A stretch of DNA of 64,000 bases from Mytilus trossulus (taxonomy: Eukaryota). The position numbers were made by a program, and so were the translations under genes. The notes below the pieces were generated by a model. That model had not been told where the DNA came from, searched no databases, and saw only the letters and a program-made list of their open reading frames with translations. Shown in pieces: positions 1,671 to 35,590 of this stretch. How positions within the stretch are numbered: the stretch's first letter is position 1; every line of letters starts with the position of its first letter. The stretch lies in NCBI RefSeq assembly GCF_036588685.1, contig NC_086379.1, forward strand, positions 35,650,001 to 35,714,000. Direction: 5' to 3'.

Positions 1671-4600
1671 TTAAACATGTAATTCAACAACTGTATTTAC
1701 AAGTAAGCAGTCATCACACTTACAATCTTTTTCACAAATATTACAACACGAACAACCATGTGGGCTGTTCATAGATTTACTAAACGAAAAGATGTTCAGC
1801 AAACATTCCCTTAAACATAAATTGGATTGACAGTAGTTAATGATATCATCCTGAATTCCAGGAAGATTTCTTGAAATATCAGAATTGCTAAAATGCAGAG
1901 TTGCTTTTGCAGACTGTCCCCTCCTACCTGCACGACCAATTTCTTGCAAATAATTAGTTAAATTTCTAGGTGGTTTACAATGAATGACATGGGTGACTGA
2001 AGGAGGGTCGAATCCCATGCCAACTACACTAGTTGTAAAAATTAATCTAAATCTGGGGCAGATAGTCTGCAAATCAGATAGTATACAAGACATGACCTCT
2101 TCATCTTGGTTTGAATATAAGCAACCAAATAAAGCATTATTAAGGTTGACAATTTCTCTTCCACCAAAAACAAAATATGCATATGACATTGCATGGGAAA
2201 TATATTGCAATGGCATAAACATAAGAGTAACAGAAAATTCTTCTCTGCATTTATAGAGATTATCTACCTGTTCTTTGAATATATTTTCTATAACAGTTAA
2301 AGAGTCCCCTTTGTCTTTTTTCAAACAATGTAACAATAAATTTGGTTTGTCAGGGTTGACTGATATGTATTCCACATCTGCAAGATGTAAACATTTTGAC
2401 AAACTCTTTATATGGTGTTTGGTCAGTGTCCCACTCAGACATGCAAAAGGTGCCTTGGGGAAAAAAGATCTCAGTATATATAATTCTGAAAAGCTTTTTC
2501 TGAAGTCCTTTCCCCTGAAAAGAAATAGGCAAAATGTAAGCTTCAGCATCACATGTTAATTATTTTGAATTTACACATACATGTACACATGTAGTAAATG
2601 TAGTAATATCTGAATATGTTCATCAAATTTAAACTGTTTGCTTTAAAAATGATTTGTTCACAATCTGTTAGATATGAAATGTCTTAATAGCATTTCTAGG
2701 AAATAAAACAAAAAAAATCCTTTTACATGTATATGAAAGCTGAAATATTTAGTTTGAATAATATTCTAAATAGAATTTTTATTCATAGTAATACAAAGAG
2801 ACTCCAACACTTGTCCAAATAGCCTGAAATATTATCCATCAACTGATTCTATGTACATTATCATAATAATGGACAATACTATAAATAAGGATTTAGAATT
2901 TTCTGCTCATATGAATTGCCAACCTGGTTCTGGTGTGGTAAATCATTCTATAAAAAAAACAAATATTTAATTCATACATGTACATCTTAAGAGTTTTGGT
3001 CCAAAGGGAAATAACTCAATCATATGAGAATTCTATATATTTGAAAAATCAAAAAATGAGAGAACATTATAACATCATAAAAAGTGAAATTGATGTGCAA
3101 GAAAACAGGACATCAAAATTTGAAAAATAAATAAAAATTCAAACCCTGAAACTGTCCGGCAAACACCCTCCCTGCATGCATCATCAACAAATTATATGAA
3201 TTCCGAATAAACATAAAACAAATGCAACAAATAAACATTTAGTCATAGAACAAAAACACATCTGTTTGAAAAAAAAATAAGAAATTCAGAAGCAAAACTT
3301 TTTGAATTACCAATCATCTATTTTATGGCATTCATCTACAACTATGGCCCCAATTTTCCCATCTAAAGATGTTAGAATCTCAACACCTTTTTCTGCATTT
3401 AAAACCGCCTCAGGATGGGCTAATATAACACTGCTTTTCAACACTGCTTCTGATACTAAACATATTAAAAAATACAATTTCATTAATAAAAATCAGTTTT
3501 AGGAGGAAGGGCTTATCCTCTTAAAGGGATTCGATCCCAGGCATCTCGCCACCCTTCAAATTTCTCAATATCTGATTCAACACAAAACTTTAATATTAAG
3601 TATGATTAATGAAAAGATTCACTCTATTTTAATTAAAACTTGAATCAGATTATGAGCATAATGAAGTATAAAGAGAATCTCGAAAAACTGACTTTTATAA
3701 CTGAATAATACATTTTCTGAACCAAATGTTATCATGTAAATGAATGTAGAAATGTATGTTGTTTACACCACTTTTTTAAACGAATTTTAATTAGTAGAAT
3801 TTTAGTTATTAACTAAAAGCATTCAAATGACTTAAACCTATGTAATGAGAACAATATACTCACCATCAGCTTCCTCTTCTGTTAATAGAGTACATTTTTG
3901 ACTCAATGCCACTGCTTTAACTCCTATTTTGTCAAGTTTTTCCTTTTGCTCTTTGATGATGGATGTTAAGGGCAATATGACCAGAACTTTGTTAGGTCTT
4001 TTATACAGATTCAGTACACCTATAAAACATGAATCTGCAACCATCAATTTATGAACACAATACAAATTCATTTTTTTAATTCAGAGATATTTGATATACA
4101 TGTACATGGTATACAAAGTCCATATTATGGTGCAGAAGTGTATGTCAAATGACAATTTAATAAATTGAGAACAAAATAAGCACATCAAAATTCAAATACA
4201 TTTTGTAAATTTGTATGTTGTGACATTTGAAAGTAATCAAAATGGTCATCAGGATGGTTTTGTAAAATAATGTTTTTAAAAATGTATATTATTTTAGTAA
4301 TGTATTTTTTCTTTTAATTTCTTTAGTTGTATTAAATTACAAAACACTAACATTTTGGTATATCATGTATATACTCATGCTACTCATGTGAATTTTGTTG
4401 TGAAATTGTGGTAATATATTTTTATGAACTGAAACTGACAAAGTATATAATCAAGTGATTCATTTGTAAATATTGGGAACATTTCATCAAAAATATACAA
4501 CACTTGAAAACTGAATGATTATAAGTAAAAAAAATCCATTTCAATAATGATGAATCTATTTTAACTGCCAACAAAAAATAATAACTTTGAGTACCCCTTC

Positions 4601-6578
4601 ATGTGTTTTTTTTTCTCAATTATATTGAAATTAATGGCATACTTGAAAATTGTATCATCATGATCATATGGTGGTCAAGTTATAAGATTGAACTCACTTT
4701 TTTAACTAGATTTTCACAACATGTTATTTATATTTCGAGATTCTTTGATTAAACTTACTTGCCTTTAATATTTTAGGAATAAGATAAGTTAATATTTTTG
4801 AAAACTATTAATCTGACAGAAGTATATGTTGTATTGTATTTTTTTGCTTTGATTATTTATTCGTTTTATTTCATTCTTGACATTCAAGATGAGAATAATG
4901 CAATATAAAGATGTTTCAAATTGAAAATTGTTATTAAAATTAATGCAGTGGTTGTCATTGGTTCATGTGTCTGACATACTTGTTTTTCAATAATTGTGTT
5001 CTTATCATATTAAAAGAAGTTTTCATAGTGTAATTTTGGTCATGGTGTCAATTGAAAAAGGTCGTACAGTTTGTATTTTGCTCATAGTTGAAGATTGTAT
5101 GGTTACCTATTGTTGGTAACATATACATGTATGTCAAATTTGAAATCTGGTTGATAGCTGTCTTGGTGGCATTTATTACAGGGTTCTCACTTCAATTTTT
5201 TGCCAAGATAATTCTAACTGTTACATTGAAGGCTTTAAGCAATGTCAAAACTATAGTTCATTTCATAGATACAGGAAGATGTGGTATGAGTGCCAATGAG
5301 ACAACTCTCCATCCAAGATACAATTTTTAAAAGTAAAACCATTATAGGTCAATGTACAGACTTTAAGACTTCATGACAAATAGAGGATTGAACTGACATC
5401 ATATAAGCATTTAACTGAATGTACATGTATAGAATGAAGATCCAAGGCAATTGGAATCAGCTGCTACAACATTGCACAATCCTAATGCATTGTCGACCTA
5501 TGTAGTTGAAATTGTTGACTCAGATAATAGGTATTTATTAGTTTAGATCGGAATTTAAGTATGAAGGTGACAGAAGTGCCTTTTTCTAGTTGTTTAAATA
5601 TTCCGATGACATCAGTTGTCAATTATTGTGAAGTATAAAAAGTGGAATTGCAAATTTTTCATCTTTAAACTACATTTGTTATGAAATGGAACAGCGTATT
5701 TACGAAAAGAATATAGAAAATGGATTATCAGTGAAAAATCAAATAACAAAGTCACTGTTTTGCTAGGATACCTAAGACTAAGTGATACATAGCATCATTA
5801 ACGTCTCATCTGAGAGATTATTTAGAATTGAACGAATCTGCAGGCTGAATGCTTCTTACTGCCCAAAAGGAAGGCATTACTGAGGCATGAATAATTAAAA
5901 TGTCTTTGAATCAGATTTGAACTCTATAGTCACAATTAAAAACCACAAAAAAACTTTTATGATGAGAAAAAGAATTGTTTTGACCACATGTACAGACACT
6001 AGATTTTCTTCCTATTGCCAATATTTTCATGCTATTGACAGAACGTCTACTGCCTGTGTTTTGACAAACAAAGCTTTACAACCATGTTTGAAGGATCAGT
6101 ATCATCGATAAGGACCTTATTTGACACACAACATTAAACATATTAAAGGGCTTATTTAAGTGTGTGATAAAATTTTAGAGTATGCAAGGCTAATTTCTGA
6201 ATGAATTATCTATGCAGCGAGAACACTTTCCACTATTATCAGTGGAAAGACGGCTATATTTTCTCGGAAAGATATAATTCTACTTGTACTGCAATGTAAA
6301 TGTTACAAGGTGGATAGAATGACACAAAGTATCACAGAACTTCTAGTATAAGTTTATATCCCGAGATAGTTTAGATAAAATAATTTTCTTCGTCTCCGTT
6401 TTTCACTTTGACATTTACCTGGAAGAGCATGGAAAATAACACTCTTCCCGAAACCAACAGGAAGATTAACCACAACATCTTTCTCATTTAATATCGCTGC
6501 AATTCCAGCCATCTGTTCTCCTTTTAATGAAAAATCTGGATAGATTTCATGACACACCTTCTTAATTTTATCATCCAT
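1671..6578 (-). CDS. RecQ-family SF2 helicase, compact form (helicase core plus Zn-binding RQC cysteines), about 434 aa; join(6419..6578, 3864..4019, 3311..3455, 1671..2514)
   Basis: Four exons with GT-AG introns and phases 1,1,2 join to an open 1305-nt CDS. Motifs: I LPVGFGKS; Ia VILPLTSIIKEQ; HPE; II VVDECH followed by the aromatic loop DDWGKDFR; III LSGT; V TSVVGMGFD; VI YLQEIGRAGRRG; RQC CLR...CSCCNIC. Confidence 0.9.
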
Positions 6579-15131: not shown

Positions 15132-18100
15132 ATGGCAAGGAAGAATTTTGCCTGTGAATGGACACCCAAATCTATCATATTGACGATAATAATTGGTACT
15201 GTCTTGTTCAATGAATGTTTTATATACATCATACAGAGTTTTAGATGGCCAGACATAGGCTTAGATGATTACAGGTATATATGAATAATACTATCAACTA
15301 ATCGCTGATAAACTGATACATCATGTACATTTATGATTGATTGATGTTGATTTACACCACTTTAATCACTTTTGGTTAAATATCAAGGTGGCCACTTTTT
15401 ATTTGTTTAGGAAGACAGAGAGACCGACAAACTTCAGCAGGAAATTGGCAATCCTAGTTGATTACAATCAGAGGTTGCATACACCTGCCCTAGGGTTTAA
15501 CTCACAACTACAGAGTTGACCATTAGAATTAATGTCTCTTATTTACCTGTACGCATGTTTAGCAAGGATTTCACTGTTACAAATGTCCTTGTTTAACTGG
15601 AAATTCTTTTGTACTTCATGTTAACCTATCATAGGTTATACATGTTATGTATACTTAGCATTATACATGTAGTTATACAGTAGTTGTCGTTTGTTTATGT
15701 AATATATACGTTTTTCTCGTTTCTAGTTTTGTTTATATAGATTAGACTGTTGGTTTTCCCATTTGAATGGTTTTACACTAGTAATTTTGGGGCCCTTTAT
15801 AGCTTGTTGTTCGGTGTGAGCCAAGGCTCCGTGTTGAAGGCCGTACTTTAACCTATAATGGTTTACTTTTTAAATTGTTATTTGGATGTAGAGTTGTCTC
15901 ATTGGCACTCACACCACATCTTCCTATATCTATTAGCATGCTTAGTCGTCAGTCATTTCAAGGAATTTTGTATAAGTCAAAAAAAGTAAATTCACAGTTA
16001 TGTCATTTATATAATAGTCAAGTAAGGAAATATTACTTGCTGCACAATCTAGTCACCCAGATTGAATCTCCCAAGTTGTCAGACTTCTGAAATTTCAGAT
16101 TGATAAATGAGGTGATCTGACTGCAAGAAAACATACACATTTTTTACTGAAGTTCCATGAAGCCTTATAAACTTTCAGTTTTGAAAAAACATTTTATCCC
16201 ACCTAACAGAGTTGGTAATATACCGCAATCACTTGGTCCATCCCTCCCTTTGCAACTCCTTGTTTTAACATGTTTAATTTTTACACCATATCTCTCAGAA
16301 TTTTAGAATTTGAAAATGTTATGAAATTATTCTCTCCAGAAATTATGAAGAAGAGCAAGTTATATTACTGGTATCTGATCCACAGTTACAAGGGTACCAG
16401 ATGGAACCACGGTTTCCTGTAGGAGCATTTTCTAGATGGGACATAGATAGGTACTTAACATATATTTGTATGTAGAGTACTTGTAATAAAGTTATACATC
16501 AAGTGGTCAGGTTGCAAAGAGTTGATAAGTCTAGGTGTGTTTCAACCTTTGGTTAGCTCATAGTACATGTTTATGATAAACAGATTAAAATATGGCCATT
16601 CGGTATTGACCTGATTATCATTCCAAAGCCCCTTGGATATTTTGAAAAAACTGACAGGTATTGCTAAAGATCCATTCATAGTAAACATAAATCATTCAGT
16701 AAACTATTCAGATCCTTTTACACAGTACAATAATGCTAGATATTTAGATACATTAACAGATCTTCATGCAGCTTCAATCAGAGAGACATTATTAGATTTG
16801 TAAAAAAAATATACACCACAATGATTCTGAAGTAGTAATATGATAAAATCCTAACAATAATCAACTGCAGAAAAGTTAAGATTAACATGCAACTTACTTT
16901 TCTAGCACAAACATTTGTAATTAAAAACATAAAAAATAAACACATGTATTAAAGACAAAAAAAAAAGATGAAAATGAAAAAATTGTACTTGCATCTTCAA
17001 TCATTCCAAAAACCAATTCAAAGTTTGTAAAAATTTATGATTATGAAGAAAACCAATGACTACTGTTATATAAATAATGCATCATCAATTTTTTCTACGG
17101 ATCAATTTAACCAGAATATTATGAAATTTGTATGTTAGTATTTTTTGTAGATATTTAACCAGAACTTTTGGCTTAGCCTATCATCATGTAAAACCTGATA
17201 TTATATTATTCCTTGGTGATTTGATTGATGAGGGCAGTACAGCTTCAGATGACGAGTTTTATTATGCTTACCAAAGATTTAATGATGTGTTCTCACCAGC
17301 TCAGTATACTAAAGTAAATATAAAATACAACTAATTGGCTAGTGCTCATATCTTTTTATGCCCCTTTTTATGGGCATTATGTTTTCTGGTCTGTGCCCCC
17401 TTCCGTCCCGCTTCAATTTAAAGTTTTTGGTGGAGGAAGTTTTGATGAATTTGAAGTCCAATCAATTTGAAACTTAGTAATGTTCCCTATGATATGATCT
17501 GTCTAATTTTAAAGACAAATTTGTGATTTTATTTCATTTTCATGGTCCACTGAACATAGAAAATGATAGTGCAGATGGGGCATCTGTGTACTTGGGACAC
17601 ATTGTGGTTTGTCCTTAAGCTGTTATTTAATTTGATAAATGGTGTTTAAAGACAGAAATGAAATGTATTTGCCTGGAAATATTTTTATGCTCCATCTACG
17701 ATAGTAGAGGGGCATTATGTTTTTGTGGCCTGTGCGTTTCGTTTGTCTGTTTGTCCCTATGTCCGTCCGTCTGTCCCGCTTCAGGTTAAAGTTTGTGGTC
17801 AAGGTAGTTTTTGAGGAAGTTGAAGATCAATCAACCTGAAACTTCGTATACATGTTACTATTTTTAATGCCAAATTAGAGTTCTGACTCCAATTTCATGG
17901 TCCACTGAACATAGAAATGATAGTGCAAGTGGGGCATCCATGTACGGGGGACACATTCTTGTTTGACTATGTAAAGGAAAAAAAATATAAATAAATTTCA
18001 GTATGTAACATGTGTAATGGTAGTACATGTAGTCTTTTTTATATTTTTTATTACACTTTACAAATGATCAACATAGTTGACATGATTGATATAGATAAAT

Positions 18101-21100
18101 CTGAACATTGTGTATTTTTCTTTTGTAATTAGAAGATATATATTCCCGGTGACAATGATATAGGTGGCGAAGGCAGAGACTTCAGAACACAGAAAAAAGA
18201 GGAAAGATTTGTTAAAAATTTTGAAAATATGACTGGTGTGTCTACATTTGGGTTCATAGATTACATAAAGGTATGGTTGTATGATAACTGTTTTTCTTTG
18301 GTCATTATCATTTAAACTGGTTGTTATTGTGTTGTCATGCTCAGAATAACAAATAAGATATATAAGACCTTTACAACATGATTAAAGGGGGAATACTCAT
18401 TCTTCCTTTTAAATTATCTCCCCTTCAAGAAAGTACTGTGTAAATACATGTACATTATTTCAGTGTATTTAAGTTTTTTAATGTTTTGTTATATATTAAT
18501 TTGTCATGTCAAAATAAGCACCTATTAAGTAAATTGAAAATAATCATTTCATTGGGCATGAAATTCTTTTAATTCATGAATTTTGTTTTTAATAGTTTGT
18601 AAAATATAAGGACTCAAAATATTAATGATATTGATATGATTCTGAGAAAATGAAATTTACCCCTTTCAATGATTTGTTATCCCCTGATTCCTAGGTCTAA
18701 TATTACCTTTTTCTTCTGAGCAAGTACATAGTTCATACCATTTTGAAAAATCTTACAAACTCTTTGATGAAATTAAGTTCACATAATTCGTAGCAAATAC
18801 TCTTTAAATACATATTTGTACTTTGCAGTTAGATATGCAGTTTCCTGAGCCAAGATTTCTTGAGAAAAGAATGCTTGCTACATCATTTGGAAACAAACTT
18901 GGTCCTGGTATTCATATTTTCCTCACACACTACACTATTTTACCAAGAGACAAACCTTTTGTTATTTCTGTAGGTTTCATGTCTTTGTGTACTTTTTAAA
19001 TCTATATGTTATGTGTACAGAGACCAATTTTCACACCTTTGAATACTGTGTATAGGACATATTTTCATAGATTGAGGGAAAATTGTATTTTCTCAGATGT
19101 TTATTTTCATGATTTTGAAATACTCTGCAAAAAAGCAAAAAGGAAAATTTTTCATTATTTCACCAATAAAATTTTGGTAAATCTTAACCTATGGAATCCT
19201 AAAAAAAAAAAGTTTGCAATGAATAATAATGAATCCACAGTGAAAATAGTTTTGACCATATTGAAAGAAAATCTTTGTGACTTTCACTTTCTCCAAAATG
19301 TTCATTGGTAATTGAATATAATGCAAAAAACAATGTTCAGATGTGTGAAAATTGTTAATGTAAACAATTATAATTAACTGGTGGCTTTAAAAACAAATCT
19401 AATTATCTTACTTATATTATATTCTAAACTTGTCTAATATATTCATGCTTTTTGTAGCATAAAGCAGCAAGGAGAATTCTGCTTGTATTTTACATTAATT
19501 AATATAAAAATATAAAAAATCAAAAAGATTAATTTGACTATCACAATTTGTATATAGTTTATGCATTTATATTGTGTCAATATACAAAAATCATTTGGTT
19601 CTTTATATGTCAGTTGATTAGATATTTAAAAATCGTGTAAAATACATGCAGAGGTAATACAATTGTTCAGTGACATATTTCTAATGCAACAGTGATATTT
19701 CAGGTTGATTTAGCTTTTTATTTAATATTATTTTATAAGAATACATTCATGAATATGTTTGACTTTTATAAACAATTAAATAATACTGCCTAAAAGTTAG
19801 AAGAAAGAAATCATCTTAATTTGCAGTATACCACATCAATTTTACATAAAAATAGTTTTATGACTGAACCTGTTGCATAAGAAGTATATCTACAACCATG
19901 TTCATAAAAGGCCTCTTATTAATTGTTTTAACATGAACCAATATAATTACAGAATCCAGAAGATATGGTGTGGGTTGTACGGCCAAGAAAAGCCTCCCCT
20001 GTCCATGTTTTAGTCAGCCATTTATCTGTTCTACTCAGAGACAAAATGAGAGTTAATCCTGTAGGTTTTTCTCAACAATAAAAAGCATGATAGAGTGTTG
20101 CTACATCATAACACATTGTTGATTTTGGTCAGATCTATTTTATTTATTTACTTTAATTTTTTAGGAGGAACCCATTAGTAGACTGTAAATATAAAGTCTT
20201 ACTGTCAATATAGACATTTACTTTAGAGGTTATCTTTGATTAATCTGCAGGAAATCATCCCTTGCAGGAATAATTTTAAAAAGGAAAAAAAAATGATATG
20301 AAGTGCAAGTTTACTGTTAATGTGCAGATTTTTTTACCCTGCTTTAAAAAGTTGAGGTATTGAAACAGTATTTGGATTCTCTGAATATAACTTGCATTTG
20401 TAGTACAACATGAAAATGGAAAAACTAAGTTTTGCAACTGAAAATACACTTTCTGGTATCTACATATCTTCCATTAATTACCTTACTTTATTTATTATTT
20501 ACATTTTTGCTGCTTTATGTTATTTTAGCATATCACATGTCACTCAAGTTGAAATTATTTATGCTTCAATGATAATTATTGCAATCTGTAATTTTTCTAA
20601 TGTTTGACATAGAAATATACATGTGTTTCTAATTTTTTATGGATAAATATATTGAAATTATTTATGCTTTCTAACTGCTGCAATTCTTTTTACTTTACTT
20701 TGCAATGGAAATTATTTGTTATTTATCTAATTTCTAACATAACAATATACCTGTGTTTCTAGGAGTACCTAGTTTTTGTTGATAACCAAACGTTTTTCAC
20801 TTTTTTATTCAATATGTGAACTGATCCAAATTTGTGACAGATAAAAAAATGATTTCTTCCTATTTTCAATACTTTATTGCTAGAACAGAACTCTGACTTT
20901 TTCTGTCAATATTAGATTTTAACTTTGTTAATATAGTCTGATATGTTTTACCTATTTGTGTTTTAAAATATTTAATTATTTTGTTTCTTTTATTTTTATA
21001 CGCCCGGGACGGGACGTATTATGGTATACCGTTGTCCGTCCGTCCGTCGTCCTAACTTCGGACAATAACTCAAAAACACTTTCACCAATTCCCATGCAAC

Positions 21101-24100
21101 TTAAGTGAATTGTTTATATCTATTGACGTAAGCTCCCTTTCATTTTTTTTTAAATTTCAGATTTTAAGTTTTGGATTTATGGGGCTTTATTCATAAAAAA
21201 GGGGGGATTTTCAACACTTCGGACAATAACTCAAAAAGGATTTCACCAATGTCCTTGAAACTTTGGTGAATTGTTTATATCTATTGACCTAAGCTCCCTT
21301 TTGTTATTCTTTATTTTTTTTTAATTTCAGATTTAAAGTTTTGAATTTATGGGGCTTTATTCATAAAAAAAGGGGGATTTTTAACACTGGACAATAACTC
21401 AAAAAGGCTTTCACCAATGTCCATGAAACTTTGGTGAATTGTTTATATCTATTGATGTAAGCTCCCTTTCAATTTTTATAAATTTCAGATTTTACATTTC
21501 CGTGTTATGAATTTTTATGCTTAAAAAAGGGGGGATTTTCCAATTTTGGGACAATAACTAACACTTTCACAAAATTTTATGCAACTTTGATAAATTGTTT
21601 ATATCTATTGACCTTAATAGTGCCAATTTTTTTGTGCATTTTTATTTATTATATGGGTGGGGGGGGGGGGGGGTATTTGACAGGGCTCACACTGTTTCTA
21701 GTTGATCATATAAATTCATTTAAAGCATAAAAGACAAGTTAAAAGAGCAACGGGCGTATCATGCGCTAAAGCGCAGCCTCTATTAACCTTATATTACATA
21801 TTTAACAAATTTTAAGTTTAATTATTTAAATAGTTGAAAAAGAATTGAATATCAAATATTTTACAAATAAAATTTAATAGATGGAGAATTTTTATTATAG
21901 TTTCTAAAACATACCTGATTCAAATTAATTATGTTAGTAGATAGATTCTTTTTGTAATACATGTATATTATTAATTCTTTACTTAATTTTGAAGATCCTG
22001 CAACAAGTCCGTCCTCACCTGATATTCTCAGGACACTGGCATAAGGTAAGTTGTTGAAAAGTATTTTCAATTCCAATACTGCTTTACAAACATAAACTTA
22101 ACATGATCAAATAGGTGTCATACTTAAAGGCAAACTCTTGCCACAGCTGCAGTCTCTAAGATAAAAAAAAAGGTTTATAAAATTCATATGGTAGAAAAGC
22201 ATGCTATTTTAGAAAGACCTATTGGCATCTATTTCTGTTTTCTGGTATTATTGGTCATTGTATAGTTGACATAAACCTCACATCTCCTTTTGCATATAAT
22301 TTGGAATTTCCTGCTAGGTTTTATTTAAGAAGTGAATGCTTCCTTTTTGTAATTTTATAGGGTTGTAAAGTGTTGAGGGTGCACACATTTCTAGTATGAA
22401 GCGTGGAAGCACTTCAAGCAAAGTGTGCTTCATATAATTATATTTTATGACAGGGTAGTGAAAAATAGATTTCTATCATTTACATCTTTAATTAAACTGT
22501 GCACTTTATTGTGATGGCACGTGTGATCATGAATGTTACACTCATTGGGATATGAAGGTTGATTTTAGAATGAAGCGCAAGTTTTGAAAAGGTATTTACT
22601 CCAATAATAGACAGCTATTATAGCTCAGCTTTAATACACTGCTAAAATCATGAGGAAAGGAATTAATTTTTTTATTGTTTATTGTCTAGTTCAATAGTGA
22701 TTTTCTTTCATTCCAACTTGAGATTAGGAAATGTTTGGTTGGTACAGAAATAAAGTTTTCAACATTAAACTTCTTCTAATGATCAAGACTGACAGAAAAA
22801 GACTATGATAAACAATTTAGCCTATACTATATCTTTTAAGTATCTAAGGAAAAGCACTCAATTGCACTCCTATTATTGTTTAAAACATAATGATCCTGTT
22901 TTCATCCTGTCTGTCAGTCCTACTGTCATAACTTTATGAATGCCATGCTGGAGCTTTCAATATTTTGGTCAAATACCTTTGATTTTGAAGAAAGTTTATA
23001 AAAAACATCATAATGACTGAAATGCCAAAAAATTAATACTGTGGATTTCCTTTATTTTTATTGCTTTAAATTTTTATGGATTCAGATAAACTTGCATTTT
23101 CATAGATACTTGATTACATCGTTTTAGCAATACAAGCCTATAGGGCATTAGTTATTCCTTGAACTTTTACATTTATGATTCACCTGTACCCGCTAAAACC
23201 CAGGAAAATTAGTATTCAATGAATAATGGTTAATCCACAGTATTCCACATTAATTGTATTCGACAAGGGGAATATGAGTTTTCACTTAGATTTTTCATTT
23301 AAAAACCTACTCATTTAAACTAAAATTGCAGGCCACTGTATTTCTGTGCAATGATTGTATGAAAGATGATGACTCATCATGGAGTGTAAAACAGAGAAAC
23401 ATAGAAGACATGACAGGATGGATGGTTACAAATCTGACAGAGAAACCATTCTCCATCACAGAAATCATGATACCTACATGTAGTTATAGAATGGGAGTGC
23501 CAAGTATGGGATATGGTGTGGCTATAATTAGTAAGTAGACACAGAAATCATGGTACCTACATGTAGTTATAGAATGGGAGTGCCAAGTATGGGATATGGT
23601 GTGGCTTTAATTAGTAAGTAGACACAGAAATCATGGTACCTACATGTAGTTATAGAATGGGAGTGCCAAGTATGGGATATGGTGAGGCTATAATTAGTAA
23701 GTTGATACAGAAATCATGGTACCTACGTGTAGTTATAGAATGGGAGTGCCAAGTATGGGATATGGTGTGGCTATAATTAGTTAGTAGACACAGAAATCAT
23801 GGTACCTACATGTAGTTATAGAATGGGAGTGCCAAGTATGGGATATGGTGAGGCTATAATTAGTAAGTAGACACAGAAATCATGGTACCTACATGTAGTT
23901 ATAGAATGGGAGTGCCAAGTATGGGATATGGTGAGGCTATAATTAGTAAGTAGATACAGAAATCATGGTACCTACGTGTAGTTATAGAATGGGAGTGCCA
24001 AGTATGGGATATGGTGTGGCTATAATTAGTAAGTAGACACAGAAATCATGGTACCTACGTGTAGTTATAGAATGGGAGTGCCAAGTATGGGATATGGTGA

Positions 24101-27100
24101 GGCTATAATTAGTAAGTAGACACAGAAATCATGGTACCTACGTGTAGTTATAGAATGGGAGTGCCAAGTATGGGATATGGTGAGGCTATAATTAGTAAGT
24201 AGACACAGAAATCATGGTACCTACGTGTAGTTATAGAATGGGAGTGCCAAGTATGGGATATGGTGTGGCTATAATTAGTAAGTAGACACAGAAATCATGG
24301 TACCTACATGTAGTTATAGAATGGGAGTGCCAAGTATGGGATATGGTGTGGCTTTAATTAGTAAGTAGACACAGAAATCATGGTACCTACATGTAGTTAT
24401 AGAATGGGAGTGCCAAGTATGGGATATGGTGAGGCTATAATTAGTAAGTTGATACAGAAATCATGGTACCTACGTGTAGTTATAGAATGGGAGTGCCAAG
24501 TATGGGATATGGTGTGGCTATAATTAGTAAGTAGACACAGAAATCATGGTACCTACATGTAGTTATAGAATGGGAGTGCCAAGTATGGGATATGGTGAGG
24601 CTATAATTAGTAAGTAGACACAGAAATCATGGTACCTACATGTAGTTATAGAATGGGAGTGCCAAGTATGGGATATGGTGAGGCTATAATTAGTAAGTAG
24701 ATACAGAAATCATGGTACCTACGTGTAGTTATAGAATGGGAGTGCCAAGTATGGGATATGGTGTGGCTATAATTAGTAAGTAGACACAGAAATCATGGTA
24801 CCTACATGTAGTTATAGAATGGGAGTGTCAAGTATGGGATATGGTGTGGCTATAATTAGTAAGTAGACACAGAAATCATGGTACCTACCTACATGTAGTT
24901 ATAGAATGGGAGTGCCAAGTATGGGATATGGTGTGGCTATAATTAGTAAGTAGACACAGAAATCATGGTACCTACGTGTAGTTATAGAATGGGAGTGCCA
25001 AGTATGGGATATGGTGAGGCTATAATTAGTAAGTAGACACAGAAATCATGGTACCTACGTGTAGTTATAGAATGGGAGTGCCAAGTATGGGATATGGTGA
25101 GGCTATAATTAGTAAGTAGATACAGAAATCATGGTACCTACATGTAGTTATAGAATGGGAGTGCCAAGTATGGGATATGGTGTGGCTATAATTAGTAAGT
25201 AGACACAGAAATCATGGTACCTACATGTAGTTATAGAATGGGAGTGCCAAGTATGGGATATGGTGTGGCTATAATTAGTAAGTAGACACAGAAATCATGG
25301 TACCTACATGTAGTTATAGAATGGGAGTGCCAAGTATGGGATATGGTGAGGCTATAATTAGTAAGTAGACACAGAAATCATGGTACCTACATGTAGTTAT
25401 AGAATGGGAGTGCCAAGTATGGGATATGGTGTGGCTTTAATTAGTAAGTAGACACAGAAATCATGGTACCTACGTGTAGTTATAGAATGGGAGTGCCAAG
25501 TATGGGATATGGTGTGGCTATAATTAGTAAGTAGATACAGAAATCATGGTACCTACGTGTAGTTATAGAATGGGAGTGCCAAGTATGGGATATGGTGAGG
25601 CTATAATAAGAAGTAGACACAGAAATCATGGTACCTACATGTAGTTATAGAATGGGAGTGCCAAGTATGGATATGGTGTGGCTATAATTAGTAAGTAGAC
25701 ACAGAAATCATGGTACCTACATGTAGTTATAGAATGGGAGTGCCAAGTATGGGATATGGTGTGGCTATAATAAGAAGTAGACACAGAAATGATGGTACCT
25801 ACATGTAGTTATAGAATGGGAGTGCCAAGTATGGGATATGGTGTGGCTATAATTAGTAAGTAGACACAGAAATCATGGTACCTACATGTAGTTATAGAAT
25901 GGGAGTGCCAAGTATGGGATATGGTGAGGCTATAATTAGTAAGTAGACACAGAAATCATGGTACCTACATGTAGTTATAGAATGGGAGTGCCAAGTATGG
26001 GATATGGTGTGGCTATAATTAGTAAGTAGATACAGAAATCATGGTACCTACATGTAGTTATAGAATGGGAGTGCCAAGTATGGGATATGGTGTGGCTATA
26101 ATAAGAAGTAGACACAGAAATCATGGTACCTACATGTAGTTATAGAATGGGAGTGCCAAGTATGGGATATGGTGAGGCTATAATTAGTAAGTAGACACAG
26201 AAATCATGGTACCTACATGTAGTTATAGAATGGGAGTGCCAAGTATGGGAAATGGTGAGGCTATAATTAGTAAGTAGACACAGAAATCATGGTACCTACG
26301 TGTAGTTATAGAATGGGAGTGCCAAGTATGGGATATGGTGTGGCTATAATTAGTAAGTAGACACAGAAATCATGGTACCTACATGTAGTTATAGAATGGG
26401 AGTGCCAAGTATGGGATATGGTGTGGCTATAATTAGTAAGTAGACACAGAAATCATGGTACCTACGTGTAGTTATAGAATGGGAGTGCCAAGTATGGGAT
26501 ATGGTGTGGCTATAATTAGTAAGTAGACACAGAAATCATGGTACCTACATGTAGTTATAGAATGGGAGTGCCAAGTATGGGATATGGTGAGGCTATAATT
26601 AGTAAGTAGATACAGAAATCATGGTACCTATGTGTAGTTATAGAATGGGATTGCCAAGTATGGGATATGGTGTGGCTATAATTAGTAAGTAGACACAGAA
26701 ATCATGGTACCTACGTGTAGTTATAGAATGGGAGTGCCAAGTATGGGATATGGTGTGGCTATAATTAGTAAGTAGACACAGAAATCAAGGTACCTACCTA
26801 CATGTAGTTATAGAATGGGAGTGCCAAGTATGGGATATGGTGTGGCTATAATTAGTAAGTAGACACAGAAATCATGGTACCTACATGTAGTTATAGAATG
26901 GGAGTGCCAAGTATGGGATATGGTGAGGCTATAATTAGTAAGTAGACACAGAAATCATGGTACCTACGTGTAGTTATAGAATGGGAGTGCCAAGTATGGG
27001 ATATGGTGAGGCTATAATTAGTAAGTAGACACAGAAATCATGGTACCTACGTGTAGTTATAGAATGGGAGTGCCAAGTATGGGATATGGTGTGGCTATAA

Positions 27101-30100
27101 TTAGTAAGTAGATACAGAAATCATGGTACCTACATGTAGTTATAGAATGGGAGTGCCAAGTATGGGATATGGTGTGGCTATAATTAGTAAGTAGATACAG
27201 AAATCATGGTACCTACATGTAGTTATAGAATGGGAGTGCCAAGTATGGGATATGGTGTGGCTATAATTAGTAAGTAGACACAGAAATCATGGTACCTACG
27301 TGTAGTTATAGAATGGGAGTGCCAAGTATGGGATATGGTGTGGCTATAATTAGTAAGTAGATACAGAAATCATGGTACCTACATGTAGTTATAGAATGGG
27401 AGTGCCAAGTATGGGATATGGTGTGGCTATAATTAGTAAGTAGACACAGAAATCATGGTACCTACATGTAGTTATAGAATGGGAGTGCCAAGTATGGGAT
27501 ATGGTGTGGCTATAATAAGAAGTAGACACAGAAATGATGGTACCTACATGTAGTTATAGAATGGGAGTGCCAAGTATGGGATATGGTGTGGCTATAATTA
27601 GTAAGTAGACACAGAAATCATGGTACCTACATGTAGTTATAGAATGGGAGTGCCAAGTATGGGATATGGTGAGGCTATAATTAGTAAGTAGACACAGAAA
27701 TCATGGTACCTACATGTAGTTATAGAATGGGAGTGCCAAGTATGGGATATGGTGTGGCTATAATTAATAAGTAGATACAGAAATCATGGTACCTACATGT
27801 AGTTATAGAATGGGAGTGCCAAGTATGGGATATGGTGTGGCTATAATAAGAAGTAGACACAGAAATCATGGTACCTACATGTAGTTATAGAATGGGAGTG
27901 CCAAGTATGGGATATGGTGAGGCTATAATTAGTAAGTAGACACAGAAATTATGGTACCTACATGTAGTTATAGAATGGGAGTGCCAAGTATGGGAAATGG
28001 TGAGGCTATAATTAGTAAGTAGACACAGAAATCATGGTACCTACGTGTAGTTATAGAATGGGAGTGCCAAGTATGGGATATGGTGTGGCTATAATTAGTA
28101 AGTAGACACAGAAATCATGGTACCTACATGTAGTTATAGAATGGGAGTGCCAAGTATGGGATATGGTGAGGCTATAATTAGTAAGAAGACACAGAAATCA
28201 TGGTACCTACGTGTAGTTATAGAATGGGAGTGCCAAGTATGGGATATGGTGTGGCTATAATTAGTAAGTAGACACAGAAATCATGGTACCTACATGTAGT
28301 TATAGAATGGGAGTGCCAAGTATGGGATATGGTGAGGCTATAATTAGTAAGTAGACACAGAAATCATGGTACCTACATGTAGTTATAGAATGGGAGTGCC
28401 AAGTATGGGATATGGTGTGGCTATAATTAGTAAGTAGATACAGAAATCATGGTACCTACATGTAGTTATAGAATGGGAGTGCCAAGTATGGGATATGGTG
28501 TGGCTATAATTAGTAAGTAGACACAGAAATCATGGTACCTACATGTAGTTATAGAATGGGAGTGCCAAGTATGGGATATGGTGTGGCTATAATTAGTAAG
28601 TAGACACAGAAATCATGGTACCTACATGTAGTTATAGAATGGGAGTGCCAAGTATGGGATATGGTGAGGCTATAATTAGTAAGTAGACACAGAAATCATG
28701 GTACCTACATGTAGTTATAGAATGGGAGTGCCAAGTATGGGAAATGGTGAGGCTATAATTAGTAAGTAGACACAGAAATCATGGTACCTACGTGTAGTTA
28801 TAGAATGGGAGTGCCAAGTATGGGATATGGTGTGGCTATAATTAGTAAGTAGACACAGAAATCATGGTACCTACATGTAGTTATAGAATGGGAGTGCCAA
28901 GTATGGGATATGGTGAGGCTATAATTAGTAAGTAGACACAGAAATCATGGTACCTACGTGTAGTTATAGAATGGGAGTGCCAAGTATGGGATATGGTGAG
29001 GCTATAATTAGTAAGTAGACACAGAAATCATGGTACCTACGTGTAGTTATAGAATGGGAGTGCCAAGTATGGGATATGGTGTGGCTATAATTAGTAAGTA
29101 GACACAGATTTCATGGTACCTACGTGTAGTTATAGAACGGGAGTGCCAAGTATGGGATATGGTGTGGCTATAATTAGTAAGTAGACACAGAAATCATGAT
29201 ACCTACATGTAGTTATAGAATGGGAGTGCCAAGTATGGGATATGGTGTGGCTATAATTAGTAAGTAGACACAGAAATCATGGTACCTACATGTAGTTATA
29301 GAATGGGAGTGTCAAGTATGGGATATGGTGTGGCTATAATTAGTAAGTAGACACAGAAATCATGGTACCTACATGTAGTTATAGAATGGGAGTGCCAAGT
29401 ATGGGATATGGTGTGGCTATAATTAGTTAGTAGACACAGAAATCATGGTACCTACATGTAGTTATAGAATGGGAGTGCCAAGTATGGGATATGGTGTGGC
29501 TATAATTAGTAAGTAGACACAGAAATCATGGTACCTACGTGTAGTTATAGAATGGGAGTGCCAAGTATGGGATATGGTGAGGCTATAATTAGTAAGTAGA
29601 CACAGAAATCATGGTACCTACGTGTAGTTATAGAATGGGAGTGCCAAGTATGGGATATGGTGTGGCTATAATTAGTAAGTAGACACAGAAATCATGGTAC
29701 CTACGCTCGTATCTATAAAGATGTCTGTATTAACAATGCCATTCCAAGCGCACAACGCCTATTGAACTCTAATTTGAGAAGTATTGTCAACGCAATTGGT
29801 AACGACAAGCTTGAGATCAGAGGATCAGTGGTAAGGGCTAGACACGATAAAAGTACACGTGACACCTACACCAATACACAAAGACGTGGAGACCGAGACG
29901 ATACGATAGTCAATAATGTGAGTGGTAATCGTGGCTATTACAGACGAAATGATCGTGGGCGTGGAAACACTAGAGGTGGAAATAGCCATAACACGGATCA
30001 AAGGTCAACCTATAGAAATGGACAATCTACCAATGATAACCATAATCAGTCAGAAAGGAATTTGAACGGTCGGGGACGAGGAAATTACAGAGGTCAGAAC

Positions 30101-33100
30101 GGAGGTCATAATCAGAATAGCCGTGATGGGCATAAATAGGTAAACTGCGGATTTTGGAATATTAATGGTTGGAAGTCTGATGTAAATAGCGATAAATATA
30201 TGTTTTTAATCTCATGTGTAAAACATTATGATTTAGATATACTTGGACTAGCGAAGACGCATCTTACTGGGGATAACGTTATTAGCGTTGAAGGTTATCA
30301 GTGGTTTGGTCTTAATCGTAAACATATTCATGTCAGAGCAAAATCCGGATCGGGTGGTGTTGGAATTTTAATACGAAATAGCATATGCAATGAATTTGAT
30401 GTTACAATTGCAGATAATGACACTGAGGGAATTTTATGGATTAAACTTGAGAACAAAACCAATGCCAATAACGTTCTTTATGTCTGTGTTGTTTATCTTC
30501 CTCCCGAAAATTCCACACGTGCAGTTAACGTTCATGAATTCTTTGACAACTTAATGACTAAAGTATACACTGTTCCTCAAGGAAACCCCTTCTATATGTG
30601 TGGTGACTGGAATAGCCGATGTTCGGACTTCGTTGATTCAATCACTGGTATTGATAATCTTCCTGACAGACATGTTGTAGACTTTCAGTGTAACAGTTAT
30701 GGGAAGGTCTTTTGTGAATTTCTTACAGATATTAGCTGTTGTATTTTAAATGGAAGAAATACCCTACTAAATGACTACACCTATGTATCTACCCGCGGTC
30801 TGAGCGTTGTGGATTACTGCGTAGTACCGTACGAAATGCTGGATATTTTCAACAAATTTAAAGTTACAAGAACTAGTTTAATTATAGAGCAAATATGTGC
30901 TAATGGTAAATTTGATCTTCAGAAAATTATTCCAGATCATTCTCTACTGACTTGGGAAATAACGTTGAAATTTAGTCAAAGTAATAAAAATGCTGCGCAA
31001 CCAAAAAACAATCGTAAAACTAAAACCAAATATGACATCAAAATATACCAGAAGACTGGCTCAGTTCCGAATCTGCTCTGAATGATATTGATATTATTAT
31101 TCAAAATTTGGAATTTTCAAATGTAACGCAAGACAAGATTAACAATATGTATGATGCATTTGTGAATGTTATTAAAACGGAAATGTCTACAAAATTATCA
31201 TCTAAAGTGATTGTCTTATCCGACGGCGTAAATAACAAAAGAAGGAGATGTAAGAAACCTTGGTGGAGTGAGGAGTTAACTGAATTATGGAACGACGTTT
31301 GTGCATCCGAAAAAATATGGATAAAGTGTAAAATTCAAAATCAGAAAAAGTTTTTTCAACAAGTATTTGTGAATAAAAGGAAACTATTTGATAAAGCGGT
31401 TCAAAAGGCAAAATGCCAATATTGGTACTCCATGCAGGAAGAATTGAGTAATTCGTGTGGAAACCCAAAAGAGTTTTGGCGAAAAATTGGAAAAATTGGT
31501 GTAGGTAGTGAGCGCCAAAATTATATTCCTATGGAAGTAAAATTAGATAATGGTCAAATTTCTAGTGATAAAGATGAAGTTTTAAATAAATGGAAGTGTG
31601 ATTTCTCTAATATGTTTAATAGAAATGATGATAGTGATGTAAATATATGTGAAAATGATGTAGATGTTATATATGATGATATGTTAGATTGTGAAATATT
31701 TGTGGAAGAAGTATTTAATGTTTTAAAAAGTTCCAAAAATGGTAAATCACCAGGATATGACGAAATACCAGTTGAATTGTATAAGAACCAAACTATGTTA
31801 AATGCACTAACTAGAGTATTCAATATTTGTTTTGACTCTGGTAAAGTTCCAGCAATGTGGTCAAAAGGGATTATAATGCCTATTCCAAAAAGCTCAACAT
31901 CAGATCCGAGAGATCCCTTGTCGTACCGTGGTATAACTTTGGCACCAGTTTCCTACAAATTGTATTGTGGAGTATTGAACTCTCGACTAACATATAAGCT
32001 TGATGATATTGACTTCTTATGTGACGAGCAAAATGGTTTTAGAAAAGGACGTAGTACTGTTGACCATTTAAGTACATTGGCTACTATTATAGAAACTAGA
32101 AAACTTCGTAAACAATCAACAGATGTGGCATTCATTGATTTCAAAAAAGCTTACGATTGGATAAATAGAAATTTATTATTTTGTAAATTAAAAACACTTG
32201 GTATTAGTTCAAAAATGTTAAAATCACTTTATTCTCTTTATAACAATGTACAGGCTTGTGTTAAAGTAAATGGTAACTTAACCGATTGGTTTGACGTAAA
32301 TTGTGGTCTAAAACAAGGGTGTATCCTTTCGCCTTTATTATTTAATATTTATATTAATGATCTTGTTGATGAGGTCAAGAAATTGAACATAGGTATAGAC
32401 ATTGAAAATGATAAAGTTAGCATGTTGTTATATGCAGATGATCTTGTTTTTATCACTGAGAATGAGAGTGATTTACAAAAAATATTAGATGTTTTGAATA
32501 TATGGTGTTGTACTAATGACCTAACTGTTAACTTAGAAAAATCTAAAATAGTACATTTTAGAACACAGTCTGTATCTAAATCAAATTTTTCATTTTTGTT
32601 TAATGGTAACAATGTAGATATTGTTTCCCAATACACATATTTAGGTTTATTGTTTACTGAGCATTTAAGCTATGATAATATGGCAAAAGCAGTTGCTAAA
32701 GCCGCCAGTAGATCGTTGGGTCTGTTAATATCCAAATGTAAAGCTAATGGTGGATTTCAATATTGTACATTTACAAAATTATTTGATACACTTGTATGGT
32801 CTGTAATAGATTATGGTGCCTCTATATGGGGAACACGTGATTTTTCATGTATAAATAGTATTAAAAATAGAGCCATGCGTTTTGTCATGGGTGTAGGAAA
32901 ATACACGCCTAATATGTCTTTGTATGGTGACATGGGCTGGATGCCATGTAAAATCAAACAGTGGACTAGTGTTTTTAGAAACTGGACACGTTTTAATAAA
33001 ATGAATGATGATAGAGTAAATAAAAAAGTGTTTATATGGGGTAACACATGTAAAAAAGTAAAAAATTGGCATTTTAGAGTCAAAAATAAGTTTAAAGAAC

Positions 33101-35022
33101 TTGATATGGAATATTTGTGTAATGGTGCTATTTTGAACAAGGATTTAATTAAGAATATTGAAAATGTATGTTTTGAAAAATTTAAGGGAGAATGGTATGA
33201 CAAGATTATGTCAGATGATAAAAATAAATTACGTACATATAGAATGTTTAAAAATGTATATGGCGTAGAAAATTATTTAATTTTTAATATACCAGGTAGA
33301 TACAGGAGTGCTTTAGCAAAATTTAGATGCGGTGTAGCACCCATCAGAATTGAAACTGGTCGTTATGAGAATATTGATATTGAAAATAGATTATGTTTTA
33401 ACTGTACTGATGACGTTGAAGATGAAAAACATGTTTTGTTAAACTGTCCTGTATATTCAGAGATTCGTAATGTTATTTTTAACCATGCTAGTATTGTTGA
33501 TGAGAATTTTTTACATATGTCTGATAATGAGAAATTTATATTTCTTTTTACAAATGAAAATATGGTATTTTATACTGCCAAAATCTGCTATGAAATTTTA
33601 ATAAAGCGAAAATGTATTTTATATTCGTGATAGTTGACTTAAGTTGTATTTGTATTATAATTTAAAAAAATTGTTTTATAGTCTCTCATAACTCTTTATA
33701 GAGTGGCTCTTGTTGTTAATTTGTGTTTTAAAAAGCTGTATATTTTATATGTAACAAGTGGTGAGACTTTAATAAAGTATTTGTCTTGTCTTGTCTTGTC
33801 TGTAGTTATAGAATGGGAGTGCCAAGTATGGGATATGGTGAGGCTATAATTAGTAAGTAGACAGGAAAAGAGACACTCTAATTAGTAGGTAATTATCAGG
33901 AAAAACCACATGTCCCCATTCAAAAGTGTTGATTTTTTAAATAGAAAATAAGGGAGGGGGGGGGGGGGTTCAAACCCCTCAGAACTCCATCTGCCACTGA
34001 ATGTTCCTTAGCATATAAGGAATTAATGACATTCATGACATTACACTGAATAGTGTAAATCAAGAACTTGTGGGATATTTTTTTTTCCGTGGGATTCACT
34101 CCAATAATAGTGATTTAATTTATCAATGGTTCTTTCGACAGTTTTAAATCACTGTTTCATAGCTAGGCACTACTAAATAGAAGGATGACTGATGCACTAT
34201 ATACTAAATATCTCTTTAATTGAATAATTTCAATATGAAAAATAAATATAGTTTTGACACCTGGCATTAAAACAGATGGTAGACCAATTAGAGTTACATG
34301 TTTAAACTTGCATTTAAATAATAGGATTGGAAACTGTTACTTCTTTTAATGTGTTGACCTTAATAACTACATATAATTAGTGCTATTGTTTTTTTCTTCA
34401 AATTGAATTGCATTTGATTGAATTGAATTTTTTCATTTCCTTGAACTGAATTTTGTTTTGGTAGATTCATCTTAAGCTCTTATTAAACCAAATTAGATCA
34501 CAGCCCAAATTACTCAATTTATGTTATCATGGTGATAAATTAATGAAATGTAAAGTACAAGTTTTAAAAGAATCTAGTGTCTTAAGACATACCTGCCAGT
34601 GGTCACTGTTTAATTGAGGGATTAAAGTTGTTGATTTACAAACCAACGAATCTGTTTTTCTAAATTTTTTCATGAAAAATTTATGTTGAAATTATTTTTT
34701 TTCCCACTGCTAATCAAAGGGGACAATAAGTGTCACTCTTGACTGAACATCTGTCTTTCCAACTGTCCTTCTCTTTGTCCCATTTTATTAGCAAAATGTT
34801 TTTTGTTTAATGTATAAGATGAACTATTTACAGTGATGTGTTTTTGTCCTCAAAATTTGCCAAAGATACATTTTTATTTGAAATTTTTCAGGAAAGAATG
34901 GTGAATTGTCATATACAATTTTATGGACACCAGCGAGATACAAAATGTTATATGGATATCTGGTGGCAATATGTGTGTGTTTACTAGTCTGTCTGACCTC
35001 CAGGTTGTTTAGAAAGAGATGA
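15132..35022 (+). CDS. MPPE1/PGAP5/Cdc1-like calcineurin-type metallophosphoesterase with N- and C-terminal TM helices, about 358 aa; join(15132..15274, 16340..16450, 17151..17313, 18133..18270, 18829..18969, 21995..22045, 23332..23530, 34892..35022)
   Basis: Eight exons with GT-AG introns and consistent phases give a 1077-nt CDS. N-terminal anchor IILTIIIGTVLFNECFIYII..WP; motifs SDPQLQG, RWDIDRYL, FLGDLIDEG, PGDNDIGGE, LTH, RPHLIFSGHWH, PTCSYRMG; C-terminal TM YGYLVAICVCLLVCL. Orthology to MPPE1 itself versus a paralogue is not established. Confidence 0.9.
15680..15930 (-). repeat. Abundant interspersed repeat, related to copies at about 5275-5360 and 10410-10630
   Basis: Reverse complement contains agatgtggtgtgagtgccaatgagacaactct...ccattataggttaaagtacggccttcaacacggagcc, similar to the 5277 and 10410 copies. 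Confidence 0.65.
17354..17962 (+). mobile_element. Two adjacent short Helentron/HINE-like non-autonomous elements (about 17354-17610 and 17682-17962)
   Basis: Both begin tttttatgc(c/t)cc..gggcattatgttt, carry GTCC-rich simple repeats and share the 3' end catggtccactgaacataga..gtgc..tggggcatc..gggacacatt. Confidence 0.65.
20992..21784 (+). mobile_element. Helentron/HINE (DINE-1/Pearl-like) non-autonomous element with an internal ~165-bp tandem repeat
   Basis: 5' tttttatacgcccg with its inverted partner cgggcgtat near the 3' end; (GTCC)n microsatellite; internal units starting ggacaataact at about 21060, 21221, 21389 and 21549; 3' hairpin tgcgctaaagcgca. Confidence 0.75.
23457..29705 (+). repeat. 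83-bp tandem array, about 75 units, made of the last ~74 nt of coding exon 7 plus its GTAAGTAGA donor region; continues at 33801-33863 after the LINE
   Basis: Unit CACAGAAATCATGGTACCTACATGTAGTTATAGAATGGGAGTGCCAAGTATGGGATATGGTGTGGCTATAATTA|GTAAGTAGA, period 83 (23458 to 23541). The first unit is the real exon end (TEIMIPTCSYRMGVPSMGYGVAII). Confidence 0.97.
29706..30139 (+). CDS. C-terminal fragment of LINE ORF1 with an RG/N-rich low-complexity tail
   Basis: Open frame ..RIYKDVCINNAIPSAQRLLNSNLRSIVNAIG...RGRGNTRGGNSH...RGRGNYRGQNGGH, ending at TAG 30137-30139. Confidence 0.65.
30140..33630 (+). pseudogene. LINE ORF2 (apurinic endonuclease + reverse transcriptase + C-terminal CCHC), one frameshift near 31040
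   Basis: EN motifs FWNING, GGVGIL, VYLPP, GDWNSR, VDY, PDH; RT motifs KSPGYDEI, YRGITL, QNGFRKGRST, FIDFKKAYD, GLKQGCILSPLLF, YADDLV, YLG; C-terminal CFNC..EDEKHVLLNC. Confidence 0.93.
33801..33863 (+). repeat. Final partial 83-bp unit of the exon-7/donor array
   Basis: tgtagttatagaatgggagtgccaagtatgggatatggtgaggctataattagtaagtagaca, followed by unique intron sequence. Confidence 0.95.
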
Positions 35023-35590
35023 CATCAGAAGAAACTCTAAAAGTATGGGTGATTTCAGCCAGCATTATATACTACAATGACAAAACCAATCTAATATCAA
35101 ATTTGTTAAAATTGAACCAGTATTATGATACATGTATATGAACATTTTCCCAATTTTTTGGAAAATATGACAATATTATATATTTTTACATCCTAGCCAA
35201 GATTTCTGCTGGCTTTATATTTATATTTTGTACCTTTGATCATATTATTAAAATATTATTTGAATATACAGTACATTAATATTGTACCAAAACAGCTGCT
35301 TGGTATAAAATGTTTATTATTGACATGAAATTTTTTTTTAAATTGGAATATAAGCTGGTATCTTTAGACTGGTAGTATATTTTTGCTATGGTTTAGAATT
35401 TTTACAAAAATAATGACATTTTAAAGGACCAAAATTGCTCATACAAAATATACATGACAAGTCCATTCTCAATTTAAAGACAAGAGCTTAGATATTATTT
35501 TTTTGTATAGAACATGCATATCCAATATATTTCAATGCAGTATGGAAATGGTTTTTGTTCTCCTAATTGATTGCTTTGTTATAAATACCA

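Follow-up and report, generated by a model that had tools for sequence, protein, structure and literature searches.

A minisatellite of 76 splice-donor units adjoining an exon of the MPPE1-like gene of the mussel Mytilus trossulus

Minisatellites that lie across an exon-intron boundary and reiterate its splice donor are known from the human genes F7, IFI6, CBS, LMNB2, and PDGF (Borensztajn et al., 2006; PMC1557585). In F7, the 37-bp unit of intron 7 (intervening sequence 7, IVS7) is present in 5-9 copies and its first monomer lies across the exon 7-IVS7 boundary; intron 2 of IFI6 (6-16) contains 25 pseudo-sites, IVS13 of CBS contains 15-20 repeats, and the arrays of LMNB2 and of PDGF intron 4 consist of 10-15 copies of 100 bp and 16-18 copies of 81 bp, respectively (PMC1557585). 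Only the authentic, most upstream donor is used in F7, LMNB2, and PDGF, and the F7 array has served as a test of first-donor selection, in which the pseudo-sites proved functional yet are outcompeted by the upstream site because of its position (PMC1557585). We examined a window of 64,000 nt from the mussel Mytilus trossulus (assembly GCF_036588685.1, contig NC_086379.1, positions 35,650,001-35,714,000 of the forward strand), in which the end of a coding exon of an MPPE1/PGAP5-like gene is repeated together with its donor, about 76-fold, into the downstream intron. Positions given below are those of the window unless another sequence is named. An earlier reading of the same DNA (the original prediction) had placed this array at 23457-33863 and stated that no description of it was known, which holds for the MPPE1 locus but not for the kind of array, which has been described in the human genes (PMC1557585).

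Tandem Repeats Finder reports a tandem array at 23457-29704 with a period of 83, 75.3 copies, 97% matches, and a score of 11703, and anchor-based splitting of 23457-33863 resolves 75 full units and a 76th, arranged head to tail. Each 83-bp unit consists of 74 nt of exon end followed by 9 nt of intron (GTAAGTAGA). In unit 1, the authentic exon end (..TEIMIPTCSYRMGVPSMGYGVAII) runs into A/GTAAGTAGA and the donor GT stands at 23531; unit 76 is split by a 4.1-kb long interspersed nuclear element (LINE) into its first 24 nt (29682-29705) and the remainder (33801-33863). The GTAAGT donor is kept at 67 of the 76 donor positions and already lost at nine, indels are present in the units, and a 12-mer, ATTAGTAAGTAG, is common to 65 of the 76. 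The KpnI site GGTACC occurs 74 times in the array, and AATAAA does not occur on its plus strand. The location and description of the array, the 65-70 perfect donors, and the KpnI site in almost every unit claimed by the original prediction thus all agree with the counts. The array lies in an intron, runs head to tail, and directly adjoins the exon, and its first monomer holds the authentic exon end and donor; by these structural features it belongs to the known class of boundary minisatellites, as a very large example of a kind already known.

A three-unit query against the whole 1.3-Gb assembly gave 32 matches, all at the MPPE1 locus, and none elsewhere, so that satellite DNA in the strict sense of a multi-locus family was rejected for this single-locus array. 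Recursive splice (ratchet) sites were also rejected, because the context of the reiterated donor is TTA/GTAAGT, with no pyrimidine tract and AG directly before GT. The AG dinucleotides within the units have pyrimidine fractions of 0.35-0.53, which overlap those of the real acceptors of the MPPE1 gene, and pyrimidine content therefore does not separate pseudo-exons. As a separate observation, the stretch from CACAG/ to the following /GTAAGT (69 nt) reads as 23 stop-free codons in phase with the exons on both sides of the intron; a single-unit pseudo-exon would add KIMVPTCSYRMGVPSMGYGVAII in frame, its acceptor context is purine-rich, and no RNA sign of it was seen.

The closest counterpart is F7, where a head-to-tail array likewise adjoins the exon and identical pseudo-donors come after the authentic one in the same intron, all facing one acceptor. 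The two differ in the make-up and strength of the unit, which in F7 comprises 4 exon and 33 intron nt with a weak donor (TGG/GTGGGT) and in the mussel 74 exon and 9 intron nt with a perfect GTAAGT. They differ also in scale, since F7 has 5-9 copies of 37 bp whereas the mussel has 76 copies of 83 bp, interrupted by a LINE, in a mollusc. IFI6 and CBS resemble it in having many reiterated donors after the authentic one. LMNB2 and PDGF have units of similar size (81-100 bp), with only the authentic donor reported as used, but they are vertebrate genes with fewer copies and no transposable element (TE) insertion. The original prediction regarded the locus as a natural test of first-donor selection; it does offer 76 near-identical donors and one acceptor, but the same test has already been made with F7 (PMC1557585).

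The host is a single-copy MPPE1/PGAP5-like housekeeping gene of the Cdc1/Ted1 type of metallophosphoesterase, with nine coding exons at 15132-35022 in the longest isoform. Exon positions were obtained by tblastn of Mytilus isoform proteins, exon by exon, and the middle boundaries are approximate. The exon translation, used as a query, retrieved full-length molluscan homologues, which bear the name metallophosphoesterase 1 or cell division control protein 1. These homologues carry the Metallophos domain (PF00149), for which exon 3 of the window alone scores under the Pfam cut-off, and the motifs DPQ, GDLIDEG, GDNDIG, and GHWH are readable in the window exons. Exons 1-7 of the window are 100% identical to the M. 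trossulus protein XP_063446840.1 and 94% identical to M. edulis 'MPPE1'. The exon from which the array arises, called exon 7 in the original prediction and here, is the same exon but the eighth of the nine coding exons when the two cassette exons of the longest isoform are counted; the last coding exon is accordingly called exon 8.

The intron after exon 7 measures 11,361 nt (23531-34891). Joining the first donor (A/) to the acceptor at 34892 (/GA) gives Arg followed by KNGELSY, which matches ..GVAII-R-KNGELSY of M. edulis and M. galloprovincialis, and, as had been claimed, only the first donor gives an open frame into exon 8. Use of any donor past the first retains ATT AGT AAG TAG, so that the frame is closed by a stop immediately behind exon 7; this was also correctly foreseen, as was the hydrophobic C-terminal helix encoded by the last exon. 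Because the 83-nt unit rotates the frame, no long open reading frame (ORF) runs through the array. The last exon is open and has the same stop as in the relatives, and the gene looks intact by its sequence, with all exons open, in line with the intact gene that had been proposed. The assembly contains no second MPPE1 gene, apart from a 418-nt stretch on another chromosome (C6:9833600-9835800, minus strand, ~9834616-9834729) that duplicates exon 8 in part, at 85% identity and with 7 nt deleted close to the stop. A retrocopy recording the splice junction was rejected for this match, since about 100 nt of intron flank are present and it is thus a genomic duplicate. The duplicate also carries the 3' untranslated region, and several of its variants are common with exon 8 of an RNA contig described below.

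At the edges of the array, the exon side reads ..TCCAT/CACAGAAATC.. and the intron side ..GTAAGTAGA/CAGGAAAAG.., and the letters in common at the breakpoints are CA only (ACAG if shifted), or 2-4 nt. These edges fit slippage or a microhomology-mediated duplication; the microhomology origin of the original prediction thus remains compatible with the sequence, but with so few shared letters the fit is a weak one. The mean pairwise difference between units is 3.8%. Units that lie 9 or 21 places apart are identical more often than others, and a perfect repeat of one 249-bp stretch lies 747 bp on, indicating that unequal exchange of several units at a time contributed to the growth of the array. 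All units have the trossulus-type Ser codon (AGT), where M. edulis and M. galloprovincialis have His and M. californianus has Asn. At position 23470, the true exon reads ATA (Ile), whereas GTA (Val) is found in 73 of the 75 scored units and in all relatives, and ATA otherwise only in unit 70. The Ser codon together with the ancestral GTA indicates that the array was born within the trossulus lineage, before the Val-to-Ile change of the exon, and the units preserve the older state of exon 7. Judged from these variants, the array is a young, lineage-specific intronic minisatellite, and the LINE is later than the array because it sits inside unit 76.

We next consider the evidence from reads, for which Logan contigs of two DNA runs (X1 and X2) and two presumed RNA runs (X8 and X9) were compared with the region 29590-35100, comprising unit 75, the LINE, the last unit, and exon 8; contig depths are rough, and contigs show presence, not absence. 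In X1, the unit contig has a word depth of 1250 compared with 28-34 for perfectly matching unique flanks (about 40-fold), and in X2, which comes from another study and bears another organism label, the unit depth is 1015 compared with 5-10 for the flanks (more than 100-fold). The A/G site of the unit (29622) shows 698:317 in X2 and 47:24 in the assembly. Tens to more than 100 copies of the unit are therefore supported in two DNA data sets. The copy number may also differ between individuals, as the rough depth ratios of X1 and X2 suggest. In RNA run X9, a 695-nt contig (depth 32.6) contains, in its loose end before 29601, the unique exon-7 sequence that leads up to the array (cf. 23427-23456), then exactly 74 unit nt, and a joint from 29674 to 34893. 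It is the first-donor, single-unit product, spliced at the predicted sites, in mRNA of the species. No contig of X9 matched a unit-unit junction in the compared region. No transcript-derived fragments of M. trossulus came up when proteins were searched with the open frame of exon 7.

Taken together, we consider the array most likely to be a tolerated intronic passenger, with the first donor chosen and the pseudo-donors silent, and give this reading a probability of about 0.65; for the array-bearing haplotype, we infer both the splicing by the first donor and the silence of the others. The array is likely a passenger because it lies entirely within the intron, past the authentic donor. An 83-bp segment of the exon-intron boundary would first have undergone a tandem duplication between the short direct repeats CA/ACAG and then have grown to 76 units by unequal exchange, including that of multi-unit blocks, and the LINE would have arrived afterwards. 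The first donor alone would be paired across the normal 199-nt exon with a real acceptor and would be chosen by exon definition or by 5'-to-3' scanning, and the other 75 pseudo-donors would be removed with the 11.4-kb intron.

Several observations weigh against this reading. None of the RNA seen here could be linked to the haplotype with the array: in its exon-8 part, the X9 contig departs from the window at 17 of 208 letters (92% alike), the first exon base included, so that this contig is from another allele than that of the window, an allele that may or may not carry the array. Run X8 has a unit-unit junction contig (depth 15) and LINE contigs, without exon 8, and X8 may itself be DNA or reflect repeats alone, so that no array RNA is concluded from it. 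The RefSeq model of the gene stops short of exon 8, and the LINE, being in sense orientation, brings eight plus-strand AATAAA motifs into the intron. The human precedents are also divided, since IFI6 and CBS use the two nearest pseudo-sites as well (PMC1557585); their use there is constitutive, whereas in the mussel a later donor would retain the in-frame TAG.

A rival explanation, which we regard as unlikely, is that the haplotype with array and LINE is hypomorphic or broken. Later donors, a cryptic acceptor, or polyadenylation in the LINE would then turn much of the transcript into forms truncated at the TAG behind exon 7, without the C-terminal helix, and alleles with a shorter array or none would supply most of the normal protein. 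The sole exon 7-exon 8 RNA contig seen does have a divergent exon 8, no RNA contig with the window's own exon 8 matched in X8 or X9 over the compared region, the eight AATAAA motifs could serve such polyadenylation, and the NCBI model of this assembly ends in ORF1 of the LINE instead of in exon 8. We checked that model piecewise by translation, exon by exon. After ..GVAII, XP_063446840.1 (505 aa) runs I-SRHRNHGTYARIYKD.. and ends ..SRDGHK, and translation of 29678-30139 gives exactly this tail. The annotated 'intron' runs from the GT at 23531 to the AG at 29674-29675 and takes out 74 units (6.1 kb); its acceptor AG joins the final exon-like base to the G of donor 75, behind a weak pyrimidine tract, and its product differs from the unspliced sequence by one G at the junction. 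The true last exon (34892-35022) is omitted, and the chimera reads through the start of unit 76 into LINE ORF1. A model whose acceptor is built from a donor and opens a frame into ORF1 looks like a computational artefact of the repeats and of protein similarity to LINE ORF1. Against a broken haplotype stand also the intact exon 8 and its acceptor, the want of a second MPPE1 gene, and the high copy number of the array in the individual of a second study, and contigs show presence, not absence.

Considerably less probable is a functional array, serving as a copy-number-tunable regulator of MPPE1, as a platform for the U1 small nuclear ribonucleoprotein (snRNP) against premature polyadenylation, or as a U1 sink. 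In telescripting by U1 snRNP, intronic U1 sites lie upstream of cryptic poly(A) signals in long introns, and these natural pseudo-sites are scattered. Such a role would suit the 67 perfect GTAAGT motifs, which lie within 6.3 kb upstream of the sense LINE and its AATAAA motifs, with one just after it, and also the unequal copy numbers hinted at by the depth ratios of X1 and X2 and the recurrence of similar arrays in the M. trossulus genome. However, the array is older than the LINE, and its units drift like neutral sequence, with nine donors lost and with indels. The arrays of the human genes, moreover, are treated as silent pseudo-sites (PMC1557585). An assembly artefact in the array or its copy number is very improbable: long near-identical arrays are error-prone and X1 is possibly the data behind the assembly, but unit contigs far exceed the flanks in X2 as well as in X1, the A:G proportion of X2 is close to that of the assembly, and the structured variants and the block duplications do not look like the result of a collapse or an expansion during assembly.

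The domain matches of the LINE, to an apurinic-type endonuclease (PF03372, E = 1.8e-6) and a reverse transcriptase (PF00078, E = 1.7e-36), place it among the non-long-terminal-repeat (non-LTR) retrotransposons, and no clear target-site duplication is visible at its ends. About 10 copies elsewhere in the genome at 95-99% identity indicate a young family, and one ORF1 copy at another place carries the annotation of a GATA zinc finger-like protein. Outside the array, a 168-bp tandem repeat (3.4 copies, 80% matches) at 21055-21612, in the intron before the GHWH exon, is probably TE-related. The coordinates of all features are listed in Table 1.

Table 1. Positions of the MPPE1-like exons, the donor array, the inserted LINE, and a second splice-junction array
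Feature	Position	Strand	Basis or remark
MPPE1-like coding exon 1, ATG at 15132, 3' boundary approximate	15132-15275	+	tblastn, 98-100% identity
Middle coding exons, approximate: 16338-16460, 17152-17313, 18133-18270, 22001-22045 (GHWH)	within 16338-22045	+	tblastn
Alternative cassette exons	18829-18969, 19953-20063	+	match RefSeq isoforms X1, X3, X4 of M. galloprovincialis
Exon 7, 66 codons + 1 base (199 nt), acceptor AG 23330-23331, donor GT 23531	23332-23530	+	sequence; alignments of homologues reach its end
83-bp tandem array, units 1-75 and 5' 24 nt of unit 76	23457-29705	+	repeat finding, unit splitting
RefSeq false acceptor and terminal 'exon' (29676-30139) through LINE ORF1	29674-30139	+	translation equals protein tail
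Non-LTR retrotransposon, sense, inside unit 76, (CTTGT)n tail	29706-33800	+	ORFs and domain matches
LINE ORFs: ORF1, endonuclease, reverse transcriptase	29762-30139, 30200-31081, 31108-33630	+	ORF2 split in two by frame change
Remainder of unit 76 with the last donor (GT at 33853), followed by original intron	33801-33863	+	intact-unit contigs bridge 29704 to 33801
Unique remainder of intron	33864-34891	+	sequence
Last coding exon (exon 8), (R)KNGELSYTILW...RLFRKR + TGA, acceptor tttttcag	34892-35022	+	95% identical to M. edulis/galloprovincialis protein end
Survivin-like array	4559-6559 of examined piece, chromosome C7		tandem array finding

The original prediction proposed a search of the genome for other arrays whose unit spans an exon-intron junction, and three further loci were confirmed, namely survivin-like, symplekin, and TRAPPC1-like. 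At the survivin-like locus, 1.16 Mb downstream on chromosome C7, a 63-bp unit is repeated 31 times, starting inside an exon and including GTAAGT. In the symplekin gene (C3:91855000-91894999), five of the six arrays found in 50 kb span a donor, and the first unit of the largest of them, with 153 copies of 93 bp (14 kb), is the end of an exon matching Pfam Symplekin_C (E = 3e-16). The TRAPPC1-like gene (C3:75995000-76014999, minus strand) carries about 115 copies of 57 bp. In an LRRC14-like gene, a 94-bp tandem array was confirmed, with a candidate acceptor junction. A fixed array end just past the donor, which would have hinted at a mechanism tied to the splice site, was rejected as a common feature, because the intron parts measure 9, ~12, 18, 21, 24, and 31 nt in six arrays. 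By a rough estimate, the chance that a 50-bp unit placed at random includes a donor is roughly 3%, and the five donor-spanning arrays of symplekin are far above this expectation, even allowing for the 632 windows searched.

These results raise the possibility, which we hold only tentatively and think rather doubtful, that a genome-wide process in Mytilus preferentially amplifies splice junctions, donors into the downstream intron and acceptors into the upstream one, often at several boundaries of a gene. Such amplification would mean a mechanism that 'sees' exon boundaries, in place of a random birth of minisatellites, and aborted cDNA-templated repair or instability due to polymerase pausing at splice sites may be candidates. 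Selective survival of the arrays, instead of a mutational process directed to junctions, may alternatively account for the recurrence.

At the MPPE1 locus itself, 76 strong donors face one acceptor, compared with 5-26 sites in the human examples, and a stop codon reveals every wrong choice. With a single-copy conserved gene and a possibly variable copy number, it can be used to test first-donor selection beyond the vertebrates. The RefSeq chimera with a LINE protein shows in addition how splice-junction arrays break automatic annotation. The lead most worth following is the recurrence of splice-junction arrays in the genome, since, if splice junctions are truly over-represented among the young tandem arrays of M. 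trossulus, the mechanism would be new.

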